A stretch of 64,000 nt of DNA from Mizuhopecten yessoensis (taxonomy: Eukaryota): assembly GCF_002113885.1 (NCBI RefSeq), contig NW_018408800.1, positions 200,907-264,906 of the forward strand. The letters are read 5' to 3'. Positions 1 through 22,600 of this stretch are shown in pieces (the first letter of the stretch is position 1; every line of letters starts with the position of its first letter). Below the pieces are notes generated by a model. That model was not told where the DNA came from and did no database searches. It saw nothing but the letters and a program-made list of their open reading frames with translations. The position numbers and the translations under genes were made by a program.

Positions 1-499
1 ATTACAGTGACCGTTAGACTGTCAAGAATGGGTTTCGCGCCAAGGTAACAGAATATGTAATTAACAATTTGATGAGTTACCGGGGTTTGACCTGGCCTGT
101 ACCTGACACATAGAGCTGATATGCGATACCGTATGACCGTAATGAAAACACAGCTGGACGTTTAGTATTTGTTATTTGCATTCGGTTTGCCTATAGCTCC
201 CCTTCACCTGTGTTTTCACACCCCTGGCCCTACCCGACGAAATACGTAAGCGCCCCGGGCGGGGGAAAACTACCGTCCAGGTACATGTAGACGGCTAGTG
301 GCTATGTTTACCTGTATACGGGACTGTGTTGTGATTTCACAGGTGTCGATTAAGGTCGTTTAAAAAATACCAAAAACACAATTTCTAAATTTAAGAAAGT
401 ATAGATATAAAGATAAGTTTATAGGTGTAGGTAGAGTATAGAAACATACGTAAAAATCAAGGTTTATATGTTTAAACACGAAACCGTATATATTGTTAA

Positions 500-690
500 G
501 GCATTCCTCAATTTACACCAACCACGATTGTTATCGCACAACGTTCGTCCATCGTGCACACATATGTGCGCAAGATTTGATCTCCCACATTTGTATCGTT
601 CGCACAACGTGCACACATCGTTCACACACCGTGCACACATCGTGCATACATCGCACATCGTGTAACGTTGCACGATCCCACAACTGTACA
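500..690. repeat. Degenerate ~11-bp tandem repeat (CACACATCGTG-like)
   Basis: Recurrent cacacatcgt / cacaacgt units. It explains the three overlapping short ORFs here. Confidence 0.6.
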
Positions 691-786
691 AACGGAATAA
701 GTGACTAATATGTTAACCCTTTTTAACTTCATTGGAGACGAAATGCTGTGAAATGAATTGAATAATATTACAGGATGCACACATAC

Positions 787-2407
787 CTAATCTCTTTGAG
801 TATACATCAAGTTTGTATGCTGCTTGCTCCAAATTACTAACATTTTCTTCAATATGATCAATTTGCTCTAAATAAGGTTGGAGGGTTTTATCTGTAAAAG
901 AAGGACAACATAGATTTTAATACAATGATATGGGTAAGCCATGATCAAATCAATGAACTATCACAGACCAATCATTGATAGCTCTCTTACAGTTTAAAGC
1001 AGGCAACTTTGATAGTTAAGCAAGTCATTGACAACATTTCATTGATCAAATTAAGTTTAATTTACTGATTTTTGTTAACTGATTGACATTAATTTGATGT
1101 AAAGAATTACATAATCACTAATTCTTTCAATCAAAAGCATTGCTGACTTTTTCACAACTAGGCTTGGTGTAAAAATTCTGAAGAGAATTAAGTATATATG
1201 CTAACTGGCACACCTTCTAAAATGTTCATTTATGTTTGGTTGAAAGAAATGATACAAAAATTCACACACACTATTATTTGCTTTGTCAAAAACGAAGAAA
1301 ACAATGTGATATTTGTTTTCAACCTTTTAAATACATGTTTTTTGTTCTGTTGGATTTCCCCAGACCAAGCCAGTCCCCACCTCAGGCTAGGCCAGTGGTG
1401 ATCATGATCTGTCAAGACATAACAGGACACTCAAGGCCCTAGAGGTGTCACAGATAAACATATGTAGATCTGTACATTTGTGTTTTCTCCATTTCTTAGT
1501 GTACTGTAAAGTGATTAAGACTTCGTTGAATGGTATCCTACATTCTGCTGTCCTGTTATGTTATGTCTTCAGTTAATGTACTAAGTCCAGATTAAATTCA
1601 AGGCTCGAAAATTGAAGTTGTTCAACAATTAAGTGTGGAATTCATTTGGAATGGAGGTAGGTGACACAGTGTGATAACATATATACCCCTAAGTACTAAG
1701 CTTATTGCAGGTAAATTGGTACAACACAATAGTAGATTCTACTTTCTTTTAAGTTATCCATACAGTGTTCATTAGGAACGTCTATCAAATACTTACATTT
1801 GTCATTCAGGTCTTGAAGTGATGTACTTATGTCTTGTGCTAACTGCTTCATTTCTGAATACTTGGCAATTGTAATTTTGTTCATGTTCTCCAGCAATTTG
1901 TAATCTTCAATTGTTCCTGAAAACAACAACCACACAGAAACTATAACCCACTTTGTACTGTAGTAGAAGTTTAATGGCTTGATCTTAATTGTTTTACAGT
2001 TCTCTTTGCCTTTTAAATTGAAGCAAATATGTACATAATATGTAATATGCAGGAATTCCAAACATTTCAAAAACGTGTCTTATCCAATTTATTCCTATAT
2101 GAAAATGGTTTTATTGCCAGCTTTTGATCACAGGTAAAGAAACACTGAGACCATTTATATATTATAACATAAATGATATAAATGATATAACTACACTACC
2201 TGGTATATATATTTCTACAGAATGACCGAAAGTCTCATCTGTCCTTCATTAATGAAAAGACTGAATTATTTTTACCTTCCATTTCTCCACGCAAGTATTC
2301 TGCTGTTTTCTGGAATGTCTCCCTACAAAGGTGAACAACATCTGGGGGTGGAGGTTCCTTTGCCTCGGAAGCTGTCTCTACCACTGGTTCCTGGTCACTG
2401 CTATTAG
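787..2407 (-). CDS. BLOC1S2: Biogenesis of lysosome-related organelles complex 1 subunit 2 (partial: three confident internal exons)
   Basis: Exons 2407-2276 ([43 protein letters not shown]), 1916-1797 ([40 protein letters not shown]) and 891-787 ([35 protein letters not shown]). All are AG..GT bounded and phase 1, and match the recognisable BLOS2 sequence ([35 protein letters not shown]). The last exon was not found and probably lies before position 1. Candidate 5' exons 3160-3103 and 3589-3509 are unverified. Confidence 0.93.
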
Positions 2408-2454
2408 CTACAATAGGTAATTTAGTATTGAATATGTTGGTATATACTTGATAG

Positions 2455-2600
2455 GAGATGTGGTAGTCTATTGGTAGGACACCGGGCTTCTGACCAAAGG
2501 GTTGCGGGTTCGGGTCACAGCACAGAACTGTGTTGTATCTTTGAGCAAGATGTTTTACCCCTACAAACTAGGTTGTGATAAAGCGGTATGTAAAAACCTC
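2455..2600 (+). mobile_element. Degenerate tRNA-derived SINE
   Basis: A-box-like TGGTAGTCTATTGG and B-box-like GGTTCGGGTC, followed by a CORE-like GTATCTTTGAGCAAGATG. Confidence 0.5.
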
Positions 2601-2811
2601 AAATTACCTCAATAGTATAGAGTTGATTGGGTTTTTCAAGTCTGTATGTCACTTTTGAGATTCTATTGAATATGCTTCTATTTTAAACTGCAACTTGGAT
2701 ATAAACATTGCATGTTTTGAGATGATTCATATCAGTAGAAGAAGTTAAACAAGAAATATCTATTGGTCCTGATACGTTTGTTTCCTATGTAAGAGGAGAA
2801 CACATGTAAAT

Positions 2812-2932
2812 CAAGCCTGAATTTGTCTGCCCCTGATACCAGGCTCGACTTTTGAACAGATAGAATAAAGATTCAGACATCTATCTGTCAAAATTTATAA
2901 GTCTAGTGTCAGGCCCAGAGAAACTTGGGCTA
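2812..2932. mobile_element. Old palindromic MITE-like element
   Basis: Imperfect inverted arms (agcctgaattt..cctgatacc..acagataga / tctatctgt..tgtcagg..aacttgggct). Confidence 0.45.
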
Positions 2933-3236
2933 CTGTAAATCTAGTGAGATGATCTTATAAACTGACCAAAAGGCCAAAGGTGATTTGGCTGTCTTTGTCA
3001 ATGATGATGATTTTTACAAAAAAGAATTGTGTATTGTTTTTGTAGGTGTCTCTAGCAGAAGGAAGTACTACACAAAGCGTAGACAGTTAGGAGTTAATTT
3101 ACTGGTATCTCTCAATTGGACTGTTGTCAGGGAAAGATGTTGATATTCTGGCCACCTTTTCTGTAAAATGATATATACATATAAACATACAGGTGTCACA
3201 CACACTGTATATATCTTTCGCTGTAGTGTACATTAT

Positions 3237-3372
3237 TCTATTATGGCCCTTTCCTGATGAGGGAACTGTTCTCTTATAGTGTTGTCTGGGGAGGTATAGT
3301 ACAGCGAGGGCACTATACCTCTCCAGACAACACTTTAAGAGAACTGTTCCCGAGGGAAAGGGTCATAATAGA
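3237..3372. mobile_element. Long hairpin element (Crypton-like non-autonomous end?)
   Basis: ~60-bp inverted arms tctattatggccctttcct..ggtatagt / actatacc..aaagggtcataataga around a GC-rich loop. Confidence 0.6.
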
Positions 3373-3499
3373 TTGAGTATTTCATATGACTGTCATTTGA
3401 CAATAAAAAGTAAAATATTTAATAATTAACAACAAATGGCAATAAGATAATTTTTTGAGTAGATCTCTCCTTTTTTTGTTGCGTATTCAATTCACTGGA

Positions 3500-3790
3500 T
3501 TGAATCACCGCTAGTTCAGATATAGTCTTTATGTATTGCTGAGCCTCTGTGAAGCAATCAGCATTCCTTGTCCCGAAATTCGAAGCCATTTTGGCAGACG
3601 ACAACAATGAAGTGAAAGTAGAATATGTACAGTGCCCCCTAGGAGAAGGGGCGCAACTTTTAGCGTCACGCTACTTTTCCCGCAGTCCCAAAAAAAGGTA
3701 AAGTGGCCGTCTCCAGGTATAGTTCCCGTTGTCAAGGGCGGATGCTAACTATACCAAATAGAACAAGGGTAGTAATCCAATAGCTATCCT
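3500..3790. promoter_or_regulatory. Probable bidirectional promoter / first-exon region between BLOC1S2 (-) and the UPF0489 gene (+)
   Basis: Locally CpG-richer stretch between two divergent genes. YY1-like CAAAATGGC on the minus strand near 3585-3593. Candidate plus-strand donors AAG|GTAAAG and CAG|GTATAG near 3697-3720. Confidence 0.4.
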
Positions 3791-5478
3791 AGAAATTATC
3801 ATGTGATATACTAAATAGTTTTTTAGCTTTTGAAGATGTCTTGATTGTATTTCACTTTTCTTATTTAAGAATTAAATAATGTTGAATAAATTATCATAAA
3901 TTGATAAAAAAAAAATCCATAATTTACACATTGATGAGTAGTGAAGGTATAGATTATGTTACCCGGGGCACCCACATTATAAAATTGACAAACATTTCTC
4001 TCTCTATAAGAACACATGTGAAGTATATTTTAACACACATACTTTATAAAGTTTACACCTGTTGATTTGTTCCCAAATGTGCAATAAAAGTACACATAAT
4101 TTAAAAACACACATGGTGTCCATGATATTAATTGTAAAAAGTGGCACAGAATTTGGACCTGTTGGTAATGTTATGGCTGTTCAGTAATTAGTAATATCAT
4201 CCAAACCTCAAAATTTTTGAAAGAGACATAACTTTTCTTCATTTCAAGCTATGTTTTTTCTTCCCGAGCGTGTTATATACAAATATTTAGAAGCTCAGAA
4301 AAACTTTCAAACTCCTTTTTCCCTGGTGAACCTCTAAGGGGGAGAAAGCGCTAGGGAGGTCGAAGAAACTCTTGTTTTTCGTTGTTTATATATATATAGA
4401 TAGTGATTCAGGCTGAAACAATCATATTTATTTGGGGTTCTACAATTTTTGCCAAGACTGTTGTTATTTAGGCGATAAGTGCAACTATTTCGGACATTTA
4501 TTTAAAATCAAGTTAACACCTTAATTAGTTATTGCATATAAAACAATAATATTTTGTTAGTTTTAGTACTTAATTTGCCCATTATGCAAGAACAAACTCC
4601 ACTGGTCAGCATTTCACACTGATGAAAAGATTCAGTTTTACCGAATAGGAGAAGATCTAGACCGTCACTCACTTTTGAGAGAACTTTTGTCCAAAAACCG
4701 AGTAAATATTGAAGGAAATGTTAGAAAATCCTGAAAAAATCACATTTTGTTTTATAGAAATATATAGCTGCTTTAAAAAGGTGAAACTGCAACACTTTCC
4801 CTTATTGGTAGCCAGATAGTCATGTTGCTGTTTGTATTTGTTGCGAGATGTTAATAATTAACTTAAGCACACCAGCAGATACATTTAAATTTATCTGTTA
4901 CTACTTTTTTAGGATAAGGTTCTAGAAGACGATTCCTCCCCATCACCAAAAGATATAAATTAACTGATCAGAACAATTTAATCAATAACATAATAACAAC
5001 ACTGAACTTATGCACATATGCAATCGGTCACAATATGATAACATCGATATGTTTTCTGACATTTACCATCATTTAATTTACGTCCATCTCTGCCATCACC
5101 AACACCGCTACCACCACCTCTTTCAGCCATGATTGATTTCTTTAAATGTCGCTAGCATCATTAAAAATACTCTTACTTTCACTTTCTCTTATGACTCCTT
5201 AATGACACAATGTTCTCAAATAACTATCGATATAATCATAAAATTGATATAAATAATGAAATTTGAAAAGTTATAGCAATTTATTTTGACAAGTAAAATA
5301 TTTTAAAGTCTTAATTTTTTTGGGATATAAGCGGACTTATTCTGCTTGGTTGCTTTTTAGATTTTGGTGACATCAGACATTTAAGGTTGAATCCAAAATG
5401 CGTTAACTAAAGTAGATTATTACACTATGAGCACAGCTGCATAGCGATTGAAACGCTGTTTATATTAGAAAGAACAAT

Positions 5479-8400
5479 ATGAAATATGCAAGCATGCGAA
5501 TGTTTTGGAAACGTCACATGATAAGCAACATAATCGGAGTAGTGTTTATTTGTGTGATTGTGGGAATTTACATCAGTCTGTTACGTTACAATAAGGCAAG
5601 CACAACGAGCTTTAACCTTGTACCAAAAAGTGTCGGCGCCTTTCCGGCATCATACCGATACAAATATCAGAAGGGAGGACTGGGACCAATATTTCATTTC
5701 TCTAACCAAGGAAAAAAGCCAATTAAACCAGGAAGGTTGCCAGTCTACATTGTTGAGGAGCATCATGAGGGTAAATTAAATTCAGTGTTAAAGAAAGTCA
5801 TACAAGTATTCGATTAGACGATTTACAGGAACGGGCAGGAATGGGCAGAAACGGGCAGAAATGGGCAGAAACGGGCAGGAACGGGCAGAAACAGACAGAA
5901 ACGTNTCCTAATGCAACCGGAAGTGAAGTGGACAGAATTAAGAAGCGCCTCAAGAAGCAACTGATGCTTACAACGGTGTCACAATCAATGAACCAATGAA
6001 CCAAAAATGCACGGCCAGACCAGGTCTCGAACCCGGGACCCTCCAAACTCGATACAGATGCTCTACACTTACCTGGTCAAGTTGACCGATGAATGACCCT
6101 GTCCAGTTCCGCTGTATATATATTCTTCCCTTCTTTTTCTTAGTCTTCACCCCCGAAGACACATCTATTTTCAACCAGTGATCGGGTATCCGCTTGCCAA
6201 AGCGACACCCAATGCTTGATACAAGAGTTGGTCACTGTAGGCAGTAACAGGAGGTGGGGAAAATGCACAGCCAAACCGGATTCAAACCCGGGACCCTCCA
6301 AACTCTTAGACGGACAATCTACCAATTCAATTTAGCTATCTGGTTGCCGACGATCAACCCAGTCCAGTTCCACTACATATCTAAGATCATTTAAGGACGC
6401 ATCTAGATCTCCATATGTGTTATGTTTGCATTGATCATGATGTGTGCTGGAGGCAGGGTATGTTGGTGTAATTGCTTTCTTGCGATAGTGCTGATCTGAT
6501 GTTGAATCTATGTTGCTAATTTGCTATCTCAGTGAAAAACTATGCCAAAGCTTAAGGCACCCAGCATATTATTCTGCTTGGTCACATAATACTGACAATG
6601 GGTGAGCTTATTGTTGGCATTACCCAAAATGCTGAATGTTTAGCAGGCAATACTACTGTTTTAAAGACTTAAGTACATGTATGTCCTGGCATAGGGAGAA
6701 CCCATGGCCATCGCCTTGCTCAATTTGGCAAAGGTACAACATTAACGCCAAAAGTAAGGTTTTGCCAAGCAAGGCACAAGGAAGCAAAAAGTCCTGAGAC
6801 TATAGAGAAATATAAAGATTCCAAAATTTGCAATGGGTGCAGCAGATTCGTTTTGGTTGCTTTAATTTTGTGTTCCAAAAGATTATAGGGCACAAACACA
6901 AAATCTACATGCTGTGATCATGCTACATGGTTAATGGCAGATGTGTTCTTTTCTAGATTCCTGACCTGTAGGGATGTCAGACTTGACACTTTTTGACAAA
7001 TCTATAGTACATGTACATGTGCCAAGTCTGATGTTGGGTCAGGAGAAATTCAGGCTATTGTAATGAAGTTAAACTGGCTTTGCAATTGGTTAATTATAAG
7101 TCTGGCCACCATAGGTCGGGTACATTTGTATGATACATACATGTATACACACCTCTCGTTCAAGTTGAAGACACTTTGTTTAATTAGCTCATGATAACCT
7201 GACACATGGCATGGATATGGCTTATAGGACACAGGACATTATATACATGTATATACATGTACATTTTTCGTATTTACAATTTTAATTTGTAACAAGTAAA
7301 TGCAGTTAGAGTGACAATTATAAGTTGATACATTGTATCAGCACATACTGCAAACATATGCATGCAAGCATGATACAGTATGTACATCTTCATGACTGAG
7401 AGCAAGTCTTCAATATTTCATAGCAGAATATTCAGGATCTGTTGCTTACATATAGACAGTTATAATTACGGTCGACTGTCAGTAACAGAAAGTGGTAGGG
7501 ATTCCATGGGTAATTTGTATTGGTTAATGATAGGCACCAACTGAAATGAAAAAGAAGTGAGGTACGTAGCTGGTATATTTGAACCTTCAACCTCAGAACT
7601 GATATAGAACTATATATATATATATATATAATGGTTTCCTATCAAATACCATTTATATGGCATAATGGAAAACCATTAAATTTTCTATTAACAATTTTTT
7701 TCAAAGTAAAATGATGAAAATATTGCTGCATCATTATAAGAAAAGTGCAGGAATTAGAAGCGTAGTATTTGATGCCAGGTTCTAATGACGTGTCTCTGGA
7801 TCCGTTGAGAACAATTAGCTTAGGCTGTGTGCTTTTTTGAATGGGCTACTCAACGCAATGCTACCATTTTCTGCTATTTCCTTGTGTAGTTTAATTTGTT
7901 TACATAAATATTATCAATTATGAAGGTATGTTAATAACTTAATGTACCAAAAATGTACAAAAACAACCACTTATTTTATAAGCTTCATCTGCAGCTGAAC
8001 TGAAAATCTGCGGTAGTAAATAGAAAATACCGTTTTGATTGGTCAATATAAAATCGATAATGACCTTATAATTATATTATTATGAGAAGTTCTTTTTACA
8101 CAACCAATATAATTTTCTATGTGACGTTTCGATGACAAGTACGATATGTACACTGTACATGTCACCTTCATCAGACAAATGACCAATTAACATCTATGAC
8201 CAAGTGTTAACAAAGGGTAGCTGAATTGAGTCATTTCGGTACATATATAACAACTATTGTACATACGTTTCCTGCGTAGCCGAAATCCACATCGATTTTA
8301 TGGACAACTCGTACACATTTTACACCTTTGTGTGCATACGCTTCATTGATCATTTGTCTGATGAAGGTGACATGTTCAGTGTACATATCGTCCTTGTCAT

Positions 8401-11400
8401 CGAAACGTCACATAGAACATTTCATTGGTTGTGTAAAAAGAACTTCTCATAATCCTTACTTACCAACCTGAAGAAAATGTTTAGAAATACTTATAATTAT
8501 ATATCATCACATTGAGATACATGTACCGGTATAACATTTTGTATTCATGCAGTCATCAATCTATAATTCGTTTGTATGGGTCTTTTTCCACTGCATGGTT
8601 AAGATATTGGTCCCACCATGTTAAATTTCAGTATTTCCAGAAATTCTATATGGGTACAGGACCCAGGGCTCGCATGTACATTTATCACTGTACATGTATT
8701 TATATAATTATTTTCAAACTGAGTGATAATTTCTGATATTTCACTGATAAAAATGTAATAAATATGACTTATCCATAACTCAACAAGGTAGCATATATAT
8801 TTTGAAATTAAACATGCATGAAGTAGCTAGCTAAAGCTTAAGCTAGTCCAGATCCAGAGAATTTATGCAATACACTGTACCTACTCAAATTACAGAACCT
8901 GGGTGTTGACAGGAGTGTTTTGAATGATTGTATACATGTATACACTCCATCATGCATACCCAAATTAAATCAACTTGTCATGTTTTTCCAAAATTCATGT
9001 ACAATATCAAATATTTACTATGTCTTTATGACTTGAAGTTACAAGTTAAGTGAAAATACATGTACAGCTGTGCATTAATTTGTAGTATTCATGAATAGAA
9101 TAAATCAAGAGGAGAAACTCTTGTACATCAGTCTCTGTCAGTCTGTCTGTCAGCTGGATTACCATAAAATGCTCTAATATAGTAAATGCTAGATTATGCA
9201 AATGCTTACGATATACTGTAATATATTTATATATATTTTAATTCATTTTATTTCAGTGCTTCCTGTTTGGTTTGAAGCAGCAAAGAACGGGTACATACCT
9301 CAGCATGGTAACACCTTGGTGAGATAATTCATTCAAATTTATGGATTGAGTTAATATTCATATCATATATTTGAATTTCTATATCGATGCATTTCGCAAA
9401 TTATCAAGAAAGGGCATGGAGAACACAGGCATGCATGTACATCCATGTAATTATATAAGAGAAGTCACTGGTTCATGTATCACAATATGAGGACATGTAC
9501 ACTACACATATACCATATATATGTACATGGATTTTTGGAATGTGTACCACATCTACATGTACTATACTATAGTAAGACACTGATGTCAATTGCAATAGTT
9601 CATGTATGCATATCATACTGGTACAATGTACATGTTCATGCATCAGGGGTGGAACCATTTCATATACTTTAGAGATCTAGCTATATATAGTATACATGTA
9701 AAACTGTTGGAATTACCTCTTTGCCCCATATACATATATACATGTAGCTATATAGCCTGCAGGCTGATATTGAAAAATCCTACTAGCTTGACCATAGTAA
9801 ATATTATATATTGAACAATTTCACAAGCTCTGGTACAAAAGCTACTGGCCCCAGGTATCGGGCTAATGGAATTGTGCATTCCGGATGCATGTGCCACGGT
9901 TAAAGGCTATTGAACACAGATACATGATATAGATACATGTATGTATCATGAAAATTTATTCCAATTACCATATGATCATTTTAGATTACATTATTACTTT
10001 CTGCTATTAAACAAACTTTTCCAAACAGAGGTGATCGTTTGTGTCACATTAACAGCAGCAACCTGTAGCATAGTTCAAGGTCAGATCAAATCTAAGAGGA
10101 CCTGAATTGGGGCGTCATGGGTCATTTTTGGCCTCATAAAACGTATGAGCATACAGCTATATATGAAAGCCTCCGCATGTGACAAACAAAAAATCCTTTC
10201 TACGGATGAACCCTGATATGACAAAGTTTAAGCTTGTTAAATATTTATATGTTTGTTGCATGCAAAGGCTTTTAAAAGTTGAAGAGTGGTTAGTTAATTT
10301 CCTTCAAAATGGCCAATTTTCAACCAAATAGCGCACAATAGAGGATATTCACACATTTTATTTTGAAAATGTAGGTTTATGTATCTCTTGGAAATGCAAT
10401 ATCTCCTAAACCAATTGTCCAATGAATTTGAAATTTCATATTTGCTGACTTCATTTATTCCAGATTTTGATATGACAACTAATTCTAAATCCCTAATGAG
10501 GCTGGAAACGACCCTTAACCCCCCTTTTCTTTTCAAAAAATAATGAAATTGAATAGATTTCCATGGGCTACGTATACATATACGGCTCCCACAGCCATTG
10601 CCATAGGAACTATAATTCACTTGATACAGTTGATTGATTTATACAATATTTTATTCTTTGTATTTGTTCACTTTATTAATGTGATTTATCTCATGGATTT
10701 AAGCCTAAAGAAAAGTGTTATTTACTTGTAGATCCATTTAGATGGTCATAGTGACATGGCGCCACCATTTTTTCTGAGCCGTTACCCAGCATGGCGTCCG
10801 CCCAAAGACAGCAAGGAACTTCATACTATGATGCAGAGAAATGATGCATTTATTGTGGTCAGTATGCACAGTTTGATATAATTATTTACAGGATTTATTT
10901 TCATTTTCATCGTGAATGATAAGAATCTCCATTCCAAAACATTTATGAATCTATTAAGATAACTTGAAAATGTTTAATGTGAGAATACATAAAGTTACAT
11001 TGTTGCTAATTACAAGATTATTTTCATTAATTCTGCAACATCAAGGTCTATAAATTACTGTAACATTCATGCTTTTGCTGTAATTGTTTTTTTAAATTTT
11101 CATGCTATAATTATTCCACTAAATTATAATAGTGCTTATTGAAGTTTCCGTATACTATTATTTACTATTACATAATATATATATATTGTTTTAAGGGAGC
11201 AAAACTCATCAATGCACTAACAGATTAAAGTTTAAGAATGTGCTAAAGTTTGAGTACACTAAAAGAATCCTAGATACTCCAGAGGTCACTCTCACTTTCG
11301 CTCTCTGCACCCCTGGAATATGTCGAAGCAAAAACAAAGGCTCAGTGTGCACCACCTGGTGGATGAGATGAGAAGACTAGTTTGATCCTTTGATGTACAT

Positions 11401-13418
11401 CGAAAAAATGTGGGTCGCATAATAGTTTGATTGACTGGCTTTGAAGTCAGGTGTCACTCTTTAGTGATCTTCAAAGGACATGTATATTAGCCCTAGTTAT
11501 TGGTCATGTTTTTTTACCTGAGAATAATCAAATAGCTAGAAGCATGCCTTCAGTTTAGCTATGACATATCCCAGGGGTGCAGAGAGCAAAAATGAGCGTT
11601 GCCTGTAGAGTATCGAGGATGACAGAAAGTGAGTTTTACAGTATGTAAAGCAGTTATGTCTTAATTAAGTCCCCTGGAGTTCCTTATGTCCATGTACTGG
11701 TTACATATTTTAACTGGTAACATATTTTACTGTAATAATTGAATTCTCTTTCATTAAAATCCAAGAAAGTTTGAAATCCATTTATGTACAGATCAAATGC
11801 AAGCATGTAAAAATCATAGGCAGTATTTCAGATGTTTCCAAGGGAAATGATATGATGATCAACGAATAATTAGGAAGGGCAGTTTTTCAGTGGCCAGATA
11901 TTTTGATTTAATTTACACACTTATAAAATGTATAGAACTAAAAGAAATAAAAGTTACATTTAAAAACTGGTAGGATTGGTACTGAGTTTTGTGAAGGCAG
12001 GGTTACTGAAAATACAGATATTAAGAATGTGAAGTGAAGATGAGAAACTTGTTACAGGCTGTCATCTCAGTCCTTCTGTCATCTTAGACTTATATATTTA
12101 AATTGATTTTTAAAATGGAATTTTCAGTGTGACTATTTGAACATTTATATTGTTTTAGGAAGCTGCAATGGCTGGGTTGATCAGGAAGGTCATCTGGATT
12201 TGGCCGAAGTGGACAGAGCACGAACATGAGGGTACAGAACAATCTGGAGAGGTTGAAGTGGGCTGGGCTCAGGTGGACGGCCCACACAGAGACAAGTTCA
12301 AGGTCTTCTGTTTGTGCTATCACAATAGCACGGAAAATGGCCGAAGTTGTATTTACTTACCTTTACAACGGGCAACAGAGTCAGGTGTTTCCATCAACCC
12401 TCACCTTTGTCATGTCAAAAAGTCATTTTTCTATAAAGAAATCAGAGAAGATATTGCTGTTCAGAAATTGAGCAAAGGTAAATTAGTGTCTTCCACTGAG
12501 TCAGTCTTACTTGATATAGATGAGGATTATTATGGGTGTGCCTATGCCTCCAAGCCATTGCTGGATGCTAATATGTCTATGGACAATATTCACAAGTTAG
12601 ACGGTCTGATACAGAAACTGTTCTGTCCTCAAGGGGCAATCAAGGAACAGGAGGCCGACCGGCTACTTGTCAGTGTGCTGGGAATTCTGAGAAAAGCACC
12701 TTCCTGTCCAAACAGTACAAATACAAAAGCTAGCAATGTCTTGCTCTCCAAAGGTCCCACTGGTCAGTCACAAAGTCATGGAGGCAAGTTTAGCTTCAAT
12801 AAAAGTATGCTGGATGTCGGAAAATCGGCCAATAAGAAGAACCCAAATTCAAACAATGTGAAGTGTAAGGTGGATTCTCTTGCTCTTTATAAAGAAGCTG
12901 AATCAGCTATTAAGAAATACTTGTGGCAGGCAAAGAATTCGGTTGCGTGTGGCAGGAGGACACCACACAGTGAGAAGATTTTAAAAGAATTAATGAATCA
13001 CTTCAAGCAGCACAGTCAAAGACAACTCAGATCTTTACAATATGTTGGTTTTTGTTTGACATCGTCACCCAAATCTAGTAAGCTTGTAAGTAAATTCAAC
13101 TTCCATGTGTGTCATGGCGTAAACTACCCTGGGCACTCCGCCGTACATGTATACATACCTGACATGTCGGAAATTCACCAGAGAACCAAACTTCTGCAGG
13201 ACATAATGTCAGCTGTGAAAAGTAAGAAAACGTCTATGGCCACTGTGTGCAGGTCTATCAGGGATGGTTACACCCCACGTCGCTACTTTAATAGGATAGA
13301 AGGGGATGTGCTAAAAGTGCTGAATGTGACGTTTGGTAATATTCAGCTGCGTTATGATTCCGATCTACTTGGTGGAAGGAAAGGGTGGCCAAGTCGACAT
13401 AAAGTGTCCCCAAAATAA
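5479..13418 (+). CDS. UPF0489 (C5orf22-like) family protein with N-terminal signal anchor, 579 aa
   Basis: Exons 5479-5770, 9257-9318, 10732-10857 and 12159-13418, all GT-AG with phases 1/0/0 consistent (1740 nt). Family motifs: LPVYIVEEHHEVLPVW, IHLDGHSD, AAMAGLIRKVIWIWPKW, VLLDIDEDYY, TVCRSIRDGYTP. N-terminal basic residues followed by the hydrophobic IIGVVFICVIVGIYISLL. Confidence 0.85.
5826..5905. repeat. 10-bp tandem repeat (AACGGGCAGA), ending at an N
   Basis: About 8 copies directly visible. N at 5905. Confidence 0.85.
6000..6377 (-). mobile_element. TRIM with tRNA-derived LTRs (bivalve TRIM/Ajax type)
   Basis: Two ~120-130-bp direct repeats (6377-6244, starting TGTAG, and ~6118-6000), each with A/B-box-like motifs (GGTTTGAATCC, GGTTCGAGACC). 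~125-bp internal region ends in polypurine AAGAAAAAGAAGGGAAGAA just before the second repeat. Confidence 0.75.
6500..6720 (-). mobile_element. Degenerate molluscan SINE (Meta-SINE-like)
   Basis: Resembles the recurrent molluscan SINE body (cataatactgaca..atgctga..gcaggca..ttttaaagact..gaaccc). Recognised from memory, not searched. Confidence 0.4.
8120..8177 (-). ncRNA. Minimal type I hammerhead ribozyme (inverted copy)
   Basis: Reverse complement reads TGTCTGATGAAGGTGACATGTACAGTGTACATATCGTACTTGTCATCGAAACGTCACA. Confidence 0.75.
8355..8412 (+). ncRNA. Minimal type I hammerhead ribozyme
   Basis: TGT-CTGATGA-A-GGTGACA[loop]TGTCATC-GAAA-CGTC-ACA: conserved core, 7-bp stem II, palindromic ACGT stem III, GUC cleavage triplet and short stem I. 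Confidence 0.75.
11268..11620. mobile_element. MITE with ~60-bp inverted arms
   Basis: atcctagatactc..gctctctgcacccctggaatatgtc is the inverse of gacatatcccaggggtgcagagagc..gagtatcgaggat. Confidence 0.65.
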
Positions 13419-13810
13419 TTCTAGGTTACTCCTGTCTTTATTCTCGTTTTAAAAATGTAGAACAGCTGTATTACTATGGCATAATGTAGAATATGTCTGT
13501 TCCCTAAAACACTGGTTTTGTGGATGATGGAACAACCAGATATAGTGGTGGTTTAATTATACAAAAAGTCTGATATTATATGTATTGACTGACAATATGA
13601 TAATTTGTTGTCATATTGACAGTTCTATTAGAGTCTGATATTACTGGTTCATTTATCAAAAATTAGAAGTTGAATTGTCCCTAGTAACTTCATAATCAAT
13701 CTGATACTGTGTGGTGCTTATTTGTCATAGGCATTATATTTTTGTAATACTTCAAGGATCCTTGTCCAACTGCACTCTTTTTTTCCTAGTATATTCAGTT
13801 ACCTCCCTTT

Positions 13811-13864
13811 AATAGATTTGGATATGACAATAGATTTGGATATGACAATAGATTTGGATATGAC
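13811..13864. repeat. 18-bp tandem repeat x3
   Basis: AATAGATTTGGATATGAC three times. Confidence 0.9.
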
Positions 13865-13993
13865 TATAGCACAGTTGAGCCAGAACACTTCCGTTGACCA
13901 GGTAGCTCAGTTGGTTAAAGTGACAGTTTAACAATCTGAGGTCCTGGGTCCCAGTACTGTTCTAGTCCAGCTCAAGTTTTTTACACTCAAAAC
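13865..13993 (+). mobile_element. tRNA-containing solo LTR (second TRIM-like family)
   Basis: gttgagccagaacacttccgttgaccaggtagctcagttgg..; homologous to the copies at 18676 and 27935. Confidence 0.6.
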
Positions 13994-14344
13994 ACTGATG
14001 TTGGTTATATTTTGTTTATTTTTCTTTATTTTGCTAGCAATGATTTCGTTTCAGAAAATAACATTTTAAAGCTATATACATACATAGCCATGCCAGAAAC
14101 AGTTTCCAGTATTTAGTTACAGTTTTTGCAGTGGTACAGGATCCTTGAGATCTGAAAAATCTCTTTATTACATTGTATATGATAGAGATCAGCTAGTTTG
14201 ATTTTGAATAGGGTGGAGTTCTTTGTCAACCTACACATTTAAAGTAGGAAGGAAATAATGAAAATTTGTCCATTAGAAATTAAAGCACTACAGCTTTTAA
14301 ATAAAAATCATTAACAAACATTTTTGTGTTTGATGTCAAGGATT

Positions 14345-14682
14345 ATCACTGATGAACTATGATTCATTGGAGGTTACATTTGTAATCACTGATGAACTAT
14401 GATCATTGGAGGTTACATTTGTCATCACTGATGAACTATGATCATTGGAGGTTACATTTGTCATCACTGATGAACTATGATTCATTGGAGGTTACATTTG
14501 TCATCACTGATGAACCATGATTCATTGGAGGTTACACTTGTAATCACTGATGAACTATGATCATTGGAGGTTACATTTGTAATCACTGATGAACTATGAT
14601 TCATTGGAGGTTACATTTGTCATCACTGATGAACTATGATTCATTGGAGGTTACATTTGTAATCACTGATGAACTATGATTC
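14345..14682. repeat. 39-40-bp minisatellite, ~8.5 copies
   Basis: Unit ATCACTGATGAACTATGA(T)TCATTGGAGGTTACATTTGT(A/C). Confidence 0.95.
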
Positions 14683-15844
14683 TGCAAAGCTTAACCCTCG
14701 GGTATTGTAAGAATGGCGCTAAATTATATGAGAAGTGTAATATATAACATTTTTTTGTAGTCCACAAAGAAAAAGCAGTATAAAATATTTGATAATTTTG
14801 TTTTATGTACAACGAAGGCAAAGCTGGTTGAAAACAACATGAAAAGTTGTGATTCAATGTACATGTTTACCAAAGCAAATATTTCTACATGTTTTATGAG
14901 ATTTTATAGTTTTGAATTCGAAATACTTCTTTCAATACATGTTAAAGCTGTTAATTCTGATATATATCCCTATCAGGTATTGTTTCATATTTATATATAA
15001 TATCTTTTTGCATTTTGTATCTGTCCCACGTAGAGGTGTATTTTGTATTCATATATATGTGTACATGTTAATATGTCCATGACAGCAATTGATCTAGACT
15101 AAGTCTGCAAATTCCATTTCAAAATATACCAGTCAGGATCGGCCTGTTTAATTTGTTGATTGAATCTAGGATATAAATATGAGTTAACATATGGAAATAA
15201 TATGGACATCATTTCCATTTTTGGACAATTTTTTGTTTTTGTTTTTTGCAAATATTTTATATCCCCCCGCCAAATATTATATATAATATATATAATATAA
15301 TATAATATACTGATAAAATGTTTGGACAAATTGATCCTGAGTCCAAACTTTTCTCTGTTATATTGCAATTGTAGAGGCTTAGTAATGTAAAAACATTTAT
15401 GGTTTGACTTGTAATATAAACCAGACTTATCATTTAAAATGAAAATTCCTTCATATTGTATGTGTAAAAATAATAATGTATACAATTGTGATGTCGATTT
15501 AGTTGTTCATAAAACACTACCATTAATTAGTGTAACTATTACACATACTGGTATTACTTTTAAAGCTTTAAGAGCTAGAACCTAAAGCTGATTCTATCTT
15601 GCCCAGTATATTCCTACTCTATACATCAAATGCAAGCTGAGGATTTATTACGCTTTCTTTTTATGTATATTTTCCAAGAATCTATTCTTGTTCATGTTTA
15701 CCAAATTGTATTGTAAATATATTAATTCCTATAGGTGTTTTGAGTCATTAGCAGTTGCAATTATGTAGTTCTTTCGCCCAAATGTGGTAAATAGTAAATA
15801 TTAAGATAAAATCCTTGTTACTTTCCATTGTGTTGATTATTGGT

Positions 15845-16770
15845 AATCACGATAATCACGATCAATAAAGGAACATGTTACTGTAACAGGGACCACGATT
15901 ACTGGCTGACCCAGCCTCCTGTCTAGTGCAATGTGTTGAGCAGTGGTGACCACCATTAATAGAGGATTATATGTTACTCTAACATGGACCATGGATACTG
16001 GCTGACCCAGCCTCCTATCTAGTGCAATGTGTTGAGCAGTGCTGATCTGATCACTATTAATAGGGGAACACATGTTACTCTTACAGGGACCTAGGTTACT
16101 GGCTGACCCAGTCTCCTGTCTAGTGCATTATGAGTTCTAGGTCTGTTGTAATTACTGCCTGTTGTAATATACAGGTATAAGGAATCATTAATTCAGTAAT
16201 GGTGAGGATCTCTATATTATATGTTATAGGTACTAATATATCATAGAGATCCTTACCATTACTGAATTAATGAGCAGTGGTGATCACCATAAATAGGGGA
16301 ACACATGTTACTCTTACAGGGACCTAGGTTACTGGCTGACCCAGGCTCCTGTCTAGTGCAATGTGTTTAGCAGTGGTGATCACCATTAATAGGGGAACAC
16401 ATGTTACTCTAACATGGACCACGATAACTGGCTGACCCAGTCTCCTGTCTAGTGCAATGTATTGAGTAGTGGTGATCACCATTAATAGAGGATTATATGT
16501 TTCTCTAACATGGACCACGATTACTGGCTGACCAAGTCTCCTGTCTAGTGCAATGTGCTGAGCAGTGGTGATCACCATTAATAGAGGATTATATGCTACT
16601 CTAACAGGTACCTCGATTACTGGCTGACCCAGTCTCCTGTCTAGTGCATTATGAGTTTTAGGTCTGTTGTAATTACTGCCTATTGTAATATACAGGTATA
16701 AGGAATCATTAATTCAGTAATGGTAAGGATCTCTATATTATATGTTATAGGTACTAATATATCATAGATG
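15845..16770. repeat. 96-bp tandem repeat (~7-8 copies) interrupted by a duplicated hairpin segment
   Basis: ACTGGCTGACCCAG.. recurs at 15901, 15997, ~16098, 16331, 16427, 16523 and ~16619. Segment 16128-16272 is repeated partially at 16648-16770. Confidence 0.9.
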
Positions 16771-17099
16771 AGTTACAGAGAATGTGTATCCACAATCGTG
16801 TGGAATTCATCGGAACATTTGTAATTGAAGCTAAATGTACAAACTGTTCTCAGTATGTTCTTGTCTTTGTTTTTCAGTTTCAAGATAAATATTTTTTTTG
16901 CCAATATCTGCTAAGCTGTACACATTTTGCCTTTTGCTAACTTTATTTATATGATCTAATTTCATATAATTGGGCTTGGTATTATGTAATATTTATTGAA
17001 TGATATTTGACTGAAGATGAGCCTTAATAATCCAACCACCTTTAATTTGGTTCTAATACTAATAGATAATCCAGCCAGAATCAGGCTTCTTAACTATAT

Positions 17100-17460
17100 G
17101 TACTTAACCTTACTCCTACAGATAATCCAACCACCTTTTCCCTCAGAGAATCCCCCACCTTGCTCCTACAGATGATCCAACCACCTTTTCCATCAGAGAA
17201 TCCCCCACCTTGCTCCTACAGATGATCCAGCCACCATTTGTTTCCAATAGATGATCCAGCCACCATTTGTTTCCAATAGATAATCCCCTCACCTTGCTCC
17301 TACAGATAATCCAGCCACCATTTGTTTCCAATAGATAATCCCCTCATGATCACCTTGCTCCTACAGTTAATCCAGCCACCATTTGTTTCCAATAGATAAT
17401 CCCCTCACCTTGCTCCTACAGTTAATCCAGCCACATTTTGTTCCCAGTTGATAATGTAGC
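17100..17460. repeat. Composite minisatellite with two alternating 26-29-bp units
   Basis: GATAATCCAGCCACCATTTGTTTCCAATA and GATAATCCCCTCACCTTGCTCCTACA. Confidence 0.85.
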
Positions 17461-18675
17461 TATCTTTGTGGCTAGATTAGATAATCCTGCCACCCTTGTT
17501 CTGAGCAGGTGATCCAGTCATTTTTGTCCCAGTGGATATTTTTGCCACCTTCATTCCCAGCAGAAGTGGCTGGGCTGTACATGTGGGACAACTGGATTAC
17601 TTGGACATTTGTATTATAGAAAATAACTAATCTGCCCTCTAAAACACTGACTGGATAGTAGGACCACGTCTTGAATAGTAGAGTTGGACTCAACTACATT
17701 TTCGAAGGACTCTTTATGAAGGATTTCCAATGTGATACACTTACCCCTTTCTATTTTTAGAGAAAACAAGACTTTGTATTGATGTCACCTTTTGTGGTGA
17801 TGGGCTAGTAATTATACAGATTCCATTGGGAATGTAACACTGATATGATTGATATGGTTCTGTATCTAACAGGTTAGACGCTTTAAGCAGTTCTGCTTGG
17901 AAGGACAGGACTAGTTGGATTTACTAGTTCACACTCACAGGAGATCACAGTTCTGTTAATAATTAATAGTGCCTTCAGATGAGATATAGCTACATGTAAC
18001 ATATGTCATTCGCATAGTATGCGTATAGGCTGTATTCTGACTGTTGTTGCTATATTAATAAAACTTTGATTTTCTGAGACTATTTCTCCCTCAGCGTTAC
18101 TCATCAGATAGCTTGCTACTGAAGGTAGCATCCCCAACACTCAGCTTGTAGCAGAAAGGATGGTTGTTGGGGACATCCTAATACTCCCTAGTAATGATAG
18201 GATGGCAAAGTCCTACAATTTTCCCACAATTTTCCTTTATCTGCAGTAGCTTTTGATAGGATTATTCATATCGGTTAATCTATCTGTCAAGTGATATTTT
18301 AATTAGAAAATGAAGTCCAAATTGATAGTAGGGTTAGATGATTCACGAGTCTTAATCTTTAACTCCTCAGATTAAGAATCAGTTGAACATGTATAAATTC
18401 ACCTTAAAGGGAGCTTCTTCCTTTTAATAGAATGTTCTGTTTGTAGTTGGGTTTTATAAAGGCCATGGAAGCTTGTAAAAGTTGTTAAGTATATAAGGAT
18501 CCCTGTAACAATGCCTAAAACTGTAATATTACTATGCACTTGAAACTGTTTTTGCAGGCATGATTTTAGCTTCGATAAATCTTTTCTGAATAGAATATCG
18601 TACCTGCAAGACTTTTTTGAAAAATGATTGTGATTAAATATGAAAAAAAAAAACAATCAACGACAGAATTCTGTT

Positions 18676-18788
18676 TGTAAACATTCAGTGGGACAAGCAT
18701 GAAACCCAGAACTTCAGATTGTTATACTATCACTGTAACAAACTGAGCTACCTGGTCAATGGAAGTGGCCCTGCCCAGCTCTTCTACA
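18676..18788 (-). mobile_element. tRNA-containing solo LTR
   Basis: Minus strand reads TGTAGAAGAGCTGGGCAGGGCCACTTCCATTGACCAGGTAGCTCAG..; same family as 13865. Confidence 0.6.
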
Positions 18789-19399
18789 ATTATCTCAATA
18801 AAAGAAATCAAGAGAAGGTTCATGTATATAGGAAAAAACAGTGCAGTGAGACAGGTATCCTTAAGCTTTCAACAGATTAAATAGGCTTCAGTATGTTCAC
18901 ACCGTTCTTTTGAACAGTCTGTTTTAAGGTGTGTGTGTTTATATTTATCGTTACAATATATGTATATAGTTTTGTATTTCTATGATATTTTCATATAGTA
19001 TTTATAAGCTTTGTTTCTAACAGTATTTTATTTTGTTCATTAAGTTCCAGCTACACTGTATATGTATAAATGCTAATTTGTTGCCATGTACAAACATAAT
19101 TATCTGTGATGATCATATATGATTCCAGTGCTGATGTTATCTGGTAACAAATAGCCATGGTGTAATTACAGTACCAGGACTCAGTTGTACACCGTTTTAA
19201 TGACACGTTAAGATACAATTTGAGCCATTGATATTTTCTGAAATTTTGAAACTAAACGTGGTCACTTTTTTGTGGCTTCTATTCGAAAATATACCCGCTG
19301 CACCCATTGCAACACATAAGAAAATAGCATTTTCTCTCCATTTTCTAATTGCATTTTGTTTCCTAGAGACATACTTGGCAAAACGTTGATTTTAGCTTT

Positions 19400-19650
19400 A
19401 GTGGTGAACGTTCGCCCAAGTGAGGAAGGTTAAGGGTCTGTTTGACGTTCAGGTTTGGATGGATAGCATTAAGGACTGGTTAACCTATTGTTATTGTAAC
19501 GTGACCAATTGGAGTGCCATGCTCTTGTGTCCAGCTTATGACATTTCAGTAAGATGACACTTTGAAGTGGTCCGTGCGTTCCCCTGACATCCGTTGACAC
19601 ATGGCTTCTGACCTTAGCTGTTATGAGATTATGTTTTGTTTTTGTTTTTG
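19400..19650 (+). mobile_element. Degenerate SINE
   Basis: tRNA-like 5' part, SINE-body-like centre, and a (GTTTT)n tail. Confidence 0.35.
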
Positions 19651-22600
19651 TGCTGATGAAGAAAATAAAACAATAAAATATCCAAGTGTAAAAATAAGAT
19701 AACAATGTTTACTTGATTTTGAGAAAACTATGGCAAAACATAACCAAAGAAAATGTTTTATGGAGACAATTGAAACGTTCATGGGGAATAAGTCTTAGAG
19801 GTGGGATACAAATGGGTCCGGTGACTGTTGTAAGTTAATATAACAGGCAAATAGTGCTATAAACACACGCAATATCGTCTTTGTCATACTCTTTTTGTAG
19901 ACTGCTGACATTTTAATGATGAAGTTGTTAAAATATCTTCACTTTGTAACTTTCGTGTTAAAGAAATGTCACTGAAGGAATATATAATGCTCTTATGCGA
20001 CACAAATACATTGCTTTCTGTTAATTATGTACATTTAATGCTTTTAAAAGTATACAGTATTTATTATAGATTTATGCAATGTGACGTATTTAATGGCCAG
20101 AATAAACTGTAAATAATGTTTTAATTGCCAAATATATAATTTAACAATTTACAGAGTTGATGGTGTATTTAACGAAATATTGGTCCTCAATTACTGAAGA
20201 GTTATATAATATCAAGTATAAGCTAGGTAATATATACTATCTGAATGTGTGAACACTACTCATCAAGATTTTTCTTCTGAAGAAAATGAAATGCTTAAAG
20301 AGATTTTTACGTTATTATGTAAAAAGAAATGTTGGAATTATGTCATTGTCCATTTGTGTATAGTGTTGAATTAATTTTTATAAGTAGCTGTAAGTTATGA
20401 ATATTGATGTAATACTTGTCTCGTTTTGGTGTACCTGGTACAATCGTTGTCTATGTAATCGCTGTATTAATTACGGCAGATCTCATCTTTTGAGGTTTTG
20501 AATTGCTTGTTTTTACTGCGGAAGTAAGTGTTAATCAGTATCAAAGATATACATGTATATAATGCATATTAATGATAGGACGTATTTTATTCACATGACA
20601 TTAACTTCTTTTTTTGGATATTTGTTTATATGATTACATAATACTTTTGTTTATTTCATGTATTTATATGGAAGAAAATGTTAACCGAATCTTCTTTAAA
20701 GTGGGTTTCATTGTAACTTGAGGTACTGTGTTAGTATTCTGTAGGATTTGGACAATAACTACTGATGAAAACGATTTCCCCCTATAATTCCAACAGTACT
20801 GTTGAATATCATCTATCAGTCTTAAGATTAGTTATTCGTGAAGATGATACTGAAAACATCATTCATGTCCAGGTACATGCAGTTTTAAAGTCCAAACAAT
20901 TCCAACACAAATTGAATGGTGAAATGAAATAGGTCAATGGAAGGAAATAGCAAAGCGCACACTGCTGTAGTCTGTTTGTATAAAAAAAATAGCTGTTTCG
21001 ATTTTCCATGTAAAAAAATAAAACAGACAAAATTGAACTTACTTAAGGGGCCCATATATACACATGACTCGATTGTTTTTGTCCACCATACATTTCTCAT
21101 AATGAATGCTTTTTTAAAACTTTTATATTTGTTGTGGAATGATTTGCGATGAAATTGAACGTATTTTTGAGCGATGGCTACATATTTAACAGTGGTGGGT
21201 TGTAAAGATATTGGCGAATAAAGAATTGGTGAAATTTACTTTGTTTTTAGTTTTAAATTGTGACAATTTTGTGTAGGAATTATCTGTCTGTCCATCAGTC
21301 TATGCACATACCAACATTCTCTGTTCTCTCTCGATATGTCAAGGGGCTTTATTGTCTAAATTTGATTTCTTCGTGAATATCAAAGAAAAGATCATCACTA
21401 GGAATTTCCCCTTTTGATTCCAGCAATCACCGAGTGTATGGTGAGACCAGGAGTTGATACATGATCAACTGCTACAAACGTCTTTATTCCGTATGTAGAA
21501 TTTGTTAATCTTAAAATAAATGGAAATAAGACGGTAAAAAACATATAGAGTAGAAATAAACCACTGACATCAAAACCTGGTGGAAAATATTGAATTAAAG
21601 GAAACTCAAAGAGAAGAAAATGGACAAGCAAAGTTATCAAAAGTCGCAGAAACCCGTGGACGTACGAAATACGGTACATTTAGGACGCTTTGCAATAAAA
21701 AAAATTGACCTAAAGAGCTAAAAGCAAAGGCGGAATGCAACTCCTAATAGGTATAATAAGCTGGCGATTTTGTTTTGTTATTGAATATGAGTATAACCTT
21801 TCTCTACGGCATATTCCATCTCTATGGAGAAGGCAGAAAACCCCAGAGCATTGCAGTATTGGGCATATTGTCAAATTCGTAAAGAAAACAAATGTGGAAA
21901 TATACGAACTGGAGAAGGTTTGTTGACAGCTTTACCATTGGTATTATTTGTAGGAATCGTACTGATAAGGCTCTATTTTTTATTGACGATAAGTGACGTT
22001 ATGTTGAAGTCGGTAAATATGCATGGTACATGTATGTGAAGATTGTTTTCTCGAATAAACTTACTCGTCAAATGTTTATATAAAAAACATCAATTGTTTT
22101 TTTATCTGAAACAATTAGATGTTTCCTTTACGCTATACATGTATACATGCATACAGCAAGCACATTCTTAAGTGCCTGTCAGATACATTTGTACCTCCCA
22201 TTGCTCTTAACAGACACCCAGAGGTGAAACTTAGTTGAATATGGTACACCGGGGAATTTTGTCCCTGTCAAACTTCGGCACTTTACCGACAAAACTCATA
22301 TTCTCCTAGTTTTGATTTAGCCATTCACATGAACTAGCATTTGTTGCCATTGCAAGTTTTCCCTCATCATGAGAATGAAAAACAGGAGGTGGATTTGTAG
22401 ACAAACACTCCCAGTATACAAGGTATTGTTATTTTACAGACATACGTGTGTTGTATTAGACCTTATGACAAGGTATTTGTTTATAAAACGTATATTATAC
22501 AAATGATAAAAAATCCACAGACTGGTCAGGAATAGACAGAAAGAAGTATAGAAAAACATATCTACATTCTTTATCTGATACACCCTGGTATGCAAACCTT

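Follow-up and report, generated by a model that had tools for sequence, protein, structure and literature searches.

What does a protein of the UPF0489/C5orf22 family do when it is tethered to a membrane, and on which side of that membrane would it work? This question is raised by LOC110463923, a gene of the scallop Mizuhopecten yessoensis that occupies positions 5479-13418 on the forward (+) strand of a 64,000-nucleotide (nt) stretch of DNA (assembly GCF_002113885.1, contig NW_018408800.1, positions 200,907-264,906), hereafter called the window, whose numbering is used throughout. In the reading that we favour, the product of this gene would be a type II anchored ureohydrolase of the Pfam family PF12640, of the peptide-arginase type, which faces the lumen or the cell exterior and acts most likely on the arginine of peptides or proteins; we assign this reading a probability of about 0.6, and its entire basis is sequence and model evidence. 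The annotation of the gene, the PF12640 family and its bacterial chemistry are already known. For an anchored, Cys-rich and presumably luminal branch of the family across spiralians and a cnidarian, we found no description in the literature searched.

The Pfam search was used to identify the family to which the whole 579-amino-acid (aa) protein belongs. It revealed a match to PF12640 (UPF0489, also listed as FlmR_OhkR_N) over residues 89-225 with a score of 57.1 bits against a gathering cut-off of 27, in agreement with the UPF0489 membership proposed in the initial annotation. No other Pfam family matched the whole protein at E values up to 0.01, PF00491 and PF00850 being among those without a match. 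When single exons were used as queries, no match was found even at E values up to 1; the gene escaped these queries and a genome-wide PF12640 search in six frames because the domain is split over four exons, not because it is absent.

The bacterial PF12640 members OspR, FlmR, OhkR and PbsE are peptide arginases, binuclear-manganese ureohydrolases that convert peptide arginine to ornithine and urea, and they share the motifs EEH(N/H)EAF, DxHxD and LDIDLDYFSC (PMC10028609, PMC12703449). In the crystal structure of OspR (8BRP), the metal ligands are His12, Asp39, His41, Asp43, Asp165 and Asp167, Glu11 is the proposed guanidine stabiliser, and Ser264 stands in place of arginase Glu277 (PMC10028609). 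A sequence search of the scallop protein (database protein P0001) against the Protein Data Bank (PDB) found OspR at an E value of 6.3e-13, with the three active-site motifs and a CRSxxxGYTP segment aligned. As evident from this alignment, EEHHEVL in the scallop protein corresponded to EEHNEAF in OspR, HLDGHSD to HVDEHSD, LDIDEDYYGC (residues 278-287) to LDIDIDYFSC, and CRSIRDGYTP to CRSRLSGYTP. All six OspR metal ligands were present in the scallop protein (H95, D122, H124, D126, D281 and D283), together with two OspR-specific active-site residues (E94 for Glu11 and S526 for Ser264).

In particular, the EEHHE motif (5755-5769, + strand; residues 93-97) placed E94 at the position of the guanidine-stabilising Glu11 and H95 at that of His12, the MnA ligand, with E kept in 55 of 60 relatives and H in 58 of 59. 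The HLDGHSD motif (10735-10755, + strand; residues 120-126) supplied D122, H124 and D126 as the counterparts of Asp39, His41 and Asp43; the first two were each kept in 63/63 relatives and the third in 61/62. Within LDIDEDY (12510-12530, + strand; residues 278-284), D281 and D283 were equated with Asp165 and Asp167 on the assumption of a one-residue offset between the chain index and the numbering of the paper, as seen at His12 and Asp39-43. D279 and D283 were each found in 127 of 127 relatives and D281 in 126 of 127. Additionally, the CRSIRDGYTP motif (13248-13277, + strand; residues 524-533) brought S526 to the position of Ser264, which takes the place of arginase Glu277; R525 was present in 126/127 relatives and S526 in 126/126. 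Across the 127-sequence alignment, in which 59-127 rows covered each position, the six metal ligands were retained in at least 97% of relatives. The EEHHE, HLDGHSD and LDIDEDY motifs thus lie where they had initially been noticed, and the metal-ligand motifs are nearly invariant.

We compared the predicted structure with known structures. The AlphaFold2 model, built from the same alignment, showed a mean predicted local distance difference test score (pLDDT) of 86.9 and a predicted template modelling score (pTM) of 0.81. It contained a confident domain from approximately residue 85 to the C-terminus and a low-confidence loop at approximately residues 350-388, which is a scallop insertion with no counterpart in the other relatives. 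The domain had the three-layer α/β/α fold of the arginases, and OspR was the closest among the matches listed. In the Foldseek search of the PDB, OspR was the top match (E value 1e-10, probability 1.00), and the only other plausible entries listed were guanidino-acid hydrolases and an agmatinase. A second structural aligner gave OspR a Z-score of 23.8, with a root mean square deviation of 3.2 over 242 residues and a sequence identity of 26%. This match was followed by a block at Z 9.7-12.6 made up of agmatinases, proclavaminate amidinohydrolase, guanidine hydrolases, arginases and metformin hydrolases, and unrelated Rossmann-like folds fell below Z 7 in the same structural listing. As modelled, the catalytic core is a ureohydrolase of the OspR type. 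Since OspR was nearest by both sequence and fold, and since the six ligands and two OspR-specific residues were kept, the evidence points to hydrolysis of guanidino groups by an arginase mechanism, with a two-metal ureohydrolase rather than a glycan deacetylase at work.

Arginine bound in peptides or proteins would be the most likely substrate because OspR was by far the closest structure and because the Ser-for-Glu277 replacement and the EEH motif are common to both proteins. A weaker argument comes from piecewise searches of the PDB, in which two of three pieces of the anchored protein found OspR (E values of 0.002 and 0.38) and none of the matching pieces of the canonical scallop paralogue did so; the queries were short and the E values weak, and the result is a hint only. 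That the substrate is specifically peptidyl-arginine we put at somewhat less than an even chance. Free guanidino or amidino compounds of small size, such as arginine, agmatine, guanidino acids or phosphagen-related guanidines, might instead be the substrates of the same anchored, lumen-facing enzyme, a reading that we consider unlikely. The structural neighbours next in rank, agmatinases, guanidinopropionase/guanidinobutyrase, guanidine hydrolases and arginases, are small-molecule enzymes, and FlmR and OhkR released traces of urea from 1 mM free arginine (PMC12703449). However, these neighbours reached a Z-score of 12.6 at most against 23.8 for OspR, the scallop protein carries the OspR-like serine and EEH motif, and OspR itself has no residues for binding the amino-acid backbone of free arginine, which it leaves unconverted (PMC10028609).

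In the mechanism that we propose for the preferred reading, H95, D122, H124, D126, D281 and D283 would coordinate a pair of metal ions, probably Mn2+, which would activate a bridging hydroxide for attack on the guanidinium carbon of the substrate, with the release of urea. E94 and S526 would act as Glu11 and Ser264 do in OspR. The protein would cross the membrane once, in the type II orientation: a short basic tail would lie in the cytosol, a signal-anchor helix would span the membrane and a disordered stem would follow, and the catalytic domain of approximately 495 residues, stabilised by perhaps five or six disulfides, would be exposed to the lumen of the endoplasmic reticulum (ER) or Golgi or to the cell exterior. 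There, the enzyme would convert arginine residues to ornithine in peptides or proteins that pass through the secretory pathway or are exposed at the cell surface. We infer the topology, the compartment, the metal identity and the substrate.

The N-terminal region of the scallop protein contained the basic residues K2, R7, K11 and R12, followed by a hydrophobic segment predicted from hydropathy and from a helix in the model to be a signal anchor (ISNIIGVVFICVIVGIYISLL; residues 15-35, encoded at 5521-5583, + strand). The 19-residue Kyte-Doolittle (KD) mean reached 2.65 at residues 17-35, while the next-best segment of the protein reached 1.47. In the structure model, a helix was present at residues 2-39 and a disordered stretch, the stem, at residues 41-77. 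The basic N-terminus, hydrophobic helix and stem of the initial annotation were therefore all present, although its helix of approximately 18 residues was slightly short, as the hydrophobic span covered approximately 21 residues (I15-L35). Among 74 full-length subfamily members with at least 40 residues upstream of the EEH motif, 65 had an N-terminal hydrophobic segment with a 19-residue hydropathy mean of at least 1.8; its median start was at residue 12, it was followed by a stem with a median length of 44 residues, and the KD values of the relatives' anchors were 2-3. The N-side flank was the more positive one in 50 of the 65 anchored relatives (mean net charge of +3.4 on the N-side and +1.1 on the C-side), and in the gastropod members the C-side flank was acidic. 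With one N-terminal hydrophobic span and the more positive flank on its N-side, the layout of the scallop protein is that expected of a type II single-pass protein. The five N-glycosylation sequons previously listed, at N216 (NST), N298 (NMS), N345 (NST), N374 (NKS) and N549 (NVT), and the 13 cysteines were found at their places.

The cysteines were strongly conserved across the subfamily. Cys 211, 213, 224, 244, 459 and 478 were invariant in 127 of 127 relatives, and Cys 316 and 424 were kept in 124 of 126-127 rows. Three pairs were present or absent together, namely 287-524 (p = 3e-7), 316-424 and 343-396. These residues bear on a different arrangement, in which the catalytic domain would be cytosolic and anchored, for instance, to the membrane of the ER or the outer membrane of mitochondria, with the invariant cysteines (C211-x-C213, C224 and C244) binding zinc instead of forming disulfides. 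Both flanks of the scallop helix are basic (+4 on the N-side and +3 on the C-side), the CxC...C...C cluster lies within one β insert and could be a Cys4 metal site, the sequons are poorly conserved, and the canonical family member is not secretory by its sequence. We nevertheless regard a cytosolic domain as decidedly unlikely. The helix is strongly hydrophobic in the scallop protein and its relatives alike, the charge bias of the relatives and the acidic C-side flanks in gastropods favour the opposite orientation, and the 8-12 conserved cysteines, with co-varying pairs over three subdomains, were not found in the anchor-less paralogue where positions were compared.

The hydrophobic N-terminus could also be a cleaved signal peptide, or the stem could be cut, so that the working form would be a soluble secreted enzyme. 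A few relatives (P0025 and P0016) have shorter, signal-peptide-like N-termini, the stem is disordered, and the RYNKAS-TT-FNLV sequence that follows the helix in scallops and oysters could be a processing site; on the other hand, a span of approximately 21 residues is long for the core of a signal peptide and the model helix extends over residues 2-39, and we hold a secreted form to be highly unlikely. Arginases and zinc deacetylases belong to one fold superfamily, and Golgi enzymes that modify glycans are usually built with a type II anchor and a stem, but a luminal deacetylase removing N-acetyl groups from glycans, the function suggested in the initial annotation, was rejected as very remote because PF12640 was the only Pfam match, the nearest solved relative was the peptide arginase OspR, followed by agmatinases, guanidino-acid hydrolases and arginases, no histone-deacetylase-type chain was among the 50 fold matches listed, and the protein carries the full six-ligand binuclear set of a ureohydrolase, not a mononuclear zinc site. 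Overall, that initial interpretation is partly supported.

Several points weigh against the anchored, lumen-facing peptide arginase that we prefer. Its orientation is argued solely from hydropathy, flank charge and cysteine conservation; the C-side flank of the scallop anchor is itself basic, and the positions of the sequons are conserved in only approximately 15-20% of relatives. The statistic for the co-variation of cysteine pairs ignores relatedness, and the 287/524 pair, the only one common to the bacterial homologue, is also Cys in that cytoplasmic enzyme. In the literature searched, we found no eukaryotic PF12640 member with demonstrated activity, and enzyme-made peptidyl-ornithine was described only for bacterial peptide natural products. 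Bacterial peptide arginases recognise leader peptides, and we know of no equivalent for the anchored subfamily.

A conserved juxtamembrane motif was observed in the otherwise disordered and variable stem. The motif, LL(R/Q)YNKAS-(S/T)T-FNLV, spanned residues 34-48 of P0001 (window 5578-5622), was found at the same place in P0002, P0003, P0005 and P0011, and was kept between scallops and oysters. It could be a site of processing, retention or glycosylation.

To describe the distribution of the subfamily, we searched 1.84 billion representative proteins with a profile built from 14 relatives, which gave 1420 matches at E values up to 0.001 and 202 at E values up to 1e-30. The best 150 matches (all with E < 1e-48) contained the subfamily cysteines where the regions were covered, and most had motifs of the DIDEDY(Y/F) and (C/S)RSxRDGYTP types. 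The named members came from bivalves, gastropods, a chiton, the annelid Owenia, the bryozoan Watersipora, the cnidarian Clytia and the flatworms Paragonimus, Heterobilharzia and Macrostomum. The nearest predicted structure belonged to an ESM Atlas cluster whose 97 members were all from eukaryotes and mostly from molluscs. Among the matches, we saw no named member from an arthropod, a nematode or a chordate, a result from which these tools do not support a claim of absence. Judged from the sequences, the subfamily is old and present in both cnidarians and spiralians, and the suggestion of an uncharacterised invertebrate subfamily was borne out by these anchored relatives.

Two groups of relatives differed at the active site. 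In P0111 (Mytilus cluster, P0188-P0192), the three motifs were replaced by EENEK, LFSNQLD and LHIDSTYF, and in P0059 (cluster P0177-P0186, bivalve-like transcripts), HIDANAD was found; both groups had lost metal ligands but kept the anchor and the conserved cysteines, and by sequence they are probably catalytically dead paralogues. Multiple anchored copies were observed in Haliotis (P0057, P0205-P0208 and P0029), Pinctada (P0012, P0016, P0039 and P0220) and Mya (P0042, P0173 and P0047), some of the mollusc copies sharing one chromosome-scale contig, while the scallop had one copy.

We also found a canonical gene of the C5orf22 type in the scallop genome (contig G000:C76750, approximately 218,180-226,300); it was the only gene revealed when the whole genome was searched in six frames for PF12640. 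Its pieces lay at L007:6180-6239, L007:7819-7965, L001:1519-1662, L008:2202-2417 and L008:4179-4292. The canonical protein started with MAKLRKYGTIPLYIVEDHNE, with 12 residues before the first strand and no hydrophobic segment, and its further pieces read VHFDSHPDLLIP, IVLDIDLDFFST and SRSSNDDYCPP. The corresponding motifs were VEDHNE, HFDSHPD, LDIDLDFFST and SRSSNDDYCP. Because the same genome has this separate canonical gene without an anchor, LOC110463923 is a divergent paralogue of C5orf22, its paralogy being as had been supposed, and is not its one-to-one orthologue; the strong PF12640 exon matches belong to the canonical gene. The separation of the anchored from the canonical proteins rests on the motif signatures, on the two genes in one genome and on the best 150 matches of the profile search. 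Searches with the core region (residues 85-180) and with a mixed alignment, in which the canonical exon pieces were poorly aligned by MAFFT, returned only members of the anchored subfamily.

The gene model comprised four exons on the + strand, totalling 1740 nt, which correspond to 579 codons and a TAA stop codon (13416-13418). Exon 1 (5479-5770; 292 nt, ending in phase 1, with the donor GTAAAT at 5771) encoded residues 1-97, that is, the start codon, the basic tail (residues 1-14), the hydrophobic anchor (residues 15-35), the stem, the first strand and EEHHE (residues 93-97). Exon 2 (9257-9318; 62 nt, acceptor TTTCAG, donor GTGAGA) encoded residues 98-118 (VLPVWFEAAKNGYIPQHGNTL), its whole codons corresponding to residues 99-118, and residue 98 (V) was encoded by the codon G|TG split across the junction of exons 1 and 2. 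Exon 3 (10732-10857; 126 nt) encoded residues 119-160 and contained HLDGHSD. Exon 4 (12159-13418; 1260 nt including the stop codon) encoded residues 161-579 and contained the remaining core, the Cys-rich β insert (approximately residues 187-256), the helical insert (approximately residues 292-456) and the C-terminal strands. All three introns were of the GT...AG type, with pyrimidine-rich tracts before the acceptors. The joined product was taken from P0001, and the exon translations were compared with it individually; each was an exact substring, so the spliced 579-aa protein first read from the DNA stood. A database search with the last exon identified P0001 as the Mizuhopecten yessoensis uncharacterized protein LOC110463923, with the UniRef name "UPF0489 protein C5orf22-l...". 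The 579-aa model is the public annotation, in which the gene is already recorded as uncharacterised or C5orf22-like. The gene was present in a single copy.

The use of exon 1 was supported by the transcript of a related scallop. The protein P0003, 75-78% identical to P0001, was encoded without interruption on a 2140-nt contig (L010, SRR23580857), and this contig is a spliced transcript because it holds a 562-aa open frame on 2.1 kb; the anchor and the catalytic part lay in that one frame. In the alignment of the contig with the window, exon 1 was matched through ...GAGCA(T/C)CATGAGG, and exon 2 followed. Since the contig left the window exactly where the latter reads GTAAAT, at the exon 1 donor, the splicing of exon 1 assumed at the outset has cross-species support. 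Many other relatives on contigs of approximately 2-3 kb also had the hydrophobic N-terminus in frame with the catalytic part. Additionally, dozens of matches in the representative search (starting at profile position 158; for example, P0009, P0068, P0070, P0075 and P0077) were "proteins" of 360-390 aa that began exactly at the start of the scallop last exon. Gene calling on genomic contigs probably produced these entries as open frames of the last exon, and in that case many species would have kept both the large terminal exon and its boundary.

Intron 1 and the surroundings of the gene contained further features. An inverted repeat was present in intron 1 at 8079-8190 and 8342-8453, with arms of 112 nt that were 94% complementary and separated by 151 nt. 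An Rfam search of 7900-8700 at E values up to 1 found no hammerhead family and gave, on both strands, only a far sub-threshold match to a long-hairpin microRNA family (34 bits, where the gathering score is 211), and an Rfam scan of window positions 1-20000 at gathering scores found nothing. At the start of the intron (5820-5900), imperfect short repeats of the GGGCAG(A/G)AA(C/T) type occurred approximately 50 nt downstream of the exon 1 donor, and a single N was present at 5905. The neighbouring exons, all on the opposite (-) strand, matched BLOC1 subunit 2 (1702-2070; PF10046), a BACK/Kelch-type protein (24866-25267; PF07707) and a sulfatase (33684-34969; PF00884, SGSH_C), and no functional link to LOC110463923 was evident.

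The enzymatic conversion of arginine to ornithine in proteins has so far been documented, in the literature searched, only in bacterial peptide natural products, and, if our reading is true, this modification would extend to animals. Ornithine formation in peptides was shown only recently for bacterial PF12640 members, and for animal C5orf22 such a role is so far a proposal, made for the human protein (PMC10028609; bioRxiv 10.64898/2026.05.28.728550). A secretory-pathway branch with a bacterial-type active site would offer a concrete, testable route to the question of whether animals make peptidyl-ornithine. Secretion and assay of the ectodomain of the anchored protein should pose little difficulty, and the mass shift from arginine to ornithine could be searched for in existing mollusc and flatworm proteomics. 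Trematode parasites have members of this branch too, and an enzyme that modifies arginine at their surface or after secretion, if real, would be of interest. It is a tentative and rather doubtful extension that non-vertebrate animals have a dedicated secretory-pathway peptide arginase converting arginine to ornithine in secreted peptides and proteins; the equally tentative targets would be neuropeptides, adhesive or shell-matrix proteins, toxins and parasite surface proteins.

We found the scallop protein and OspR to be similar in many respects. They share the Pfam family, EEH(N/H)E, DxHxD, LDIDxDY(F/Y)xC, the six ligands, the CRSxxxGYTP strand and the core of the α/β/α sandwich, and the helical insert of the scallop protein after the DIDxD strand sits where OspR has its dimerisation domain. 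In contrast to OspR, which has 309 aa, the scallop protein is an animal protein of 579 aa from a spliced gene and adds the N-terminal anchor and stem. It also contains the Cys-rich β insert, its helical insert has approximately 165 residues compared with approximately 65 in OspR, 8-12 cysteines are conserved in its subfamily, and its gene has neither a biosynthetic gene cluster nor a leader-peptide substrate.

The anchored protein and the canonical C5orf22-type protein belong to one Pfam family and carry the three motifs at matching positions, with approximately 30-35% identity over the core exons, and the intron after EEHxE lies within one nucleotide of the same place (phase 0 in the canonical gene and phase 1 in the anchored one). 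In the located parts of the canonical protein, which covered the C287 position, Ser was found there instead of Cys. The conventional arginases and agmatinases (PF00491) resemble the scallop protein in fold and in the six-ligand binuclear metal site, as reflected in their Z-scores of 10-12.6. The scallop protein, however, has no PF00491 match, the GGDHS and SxDxDxxDP motifs are replaced, and Ser stands for arginase Glu277 as in OspR; moreover, conventional arginases are soluble trimers or hexamers that act on free substrates. Like the type II modifying enzymes resident in the Golgi or ER, the scallop protein begins with a short basic tail and a single hydrophobic helix, which lead through a disordered stem of approximately 45-50 residues to a globular, Cys-containing catalytic domain. 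This likeness is one of layout and not of a homologous family, as the catalytic fold of the scallop protein is that of a ureohydrolase.

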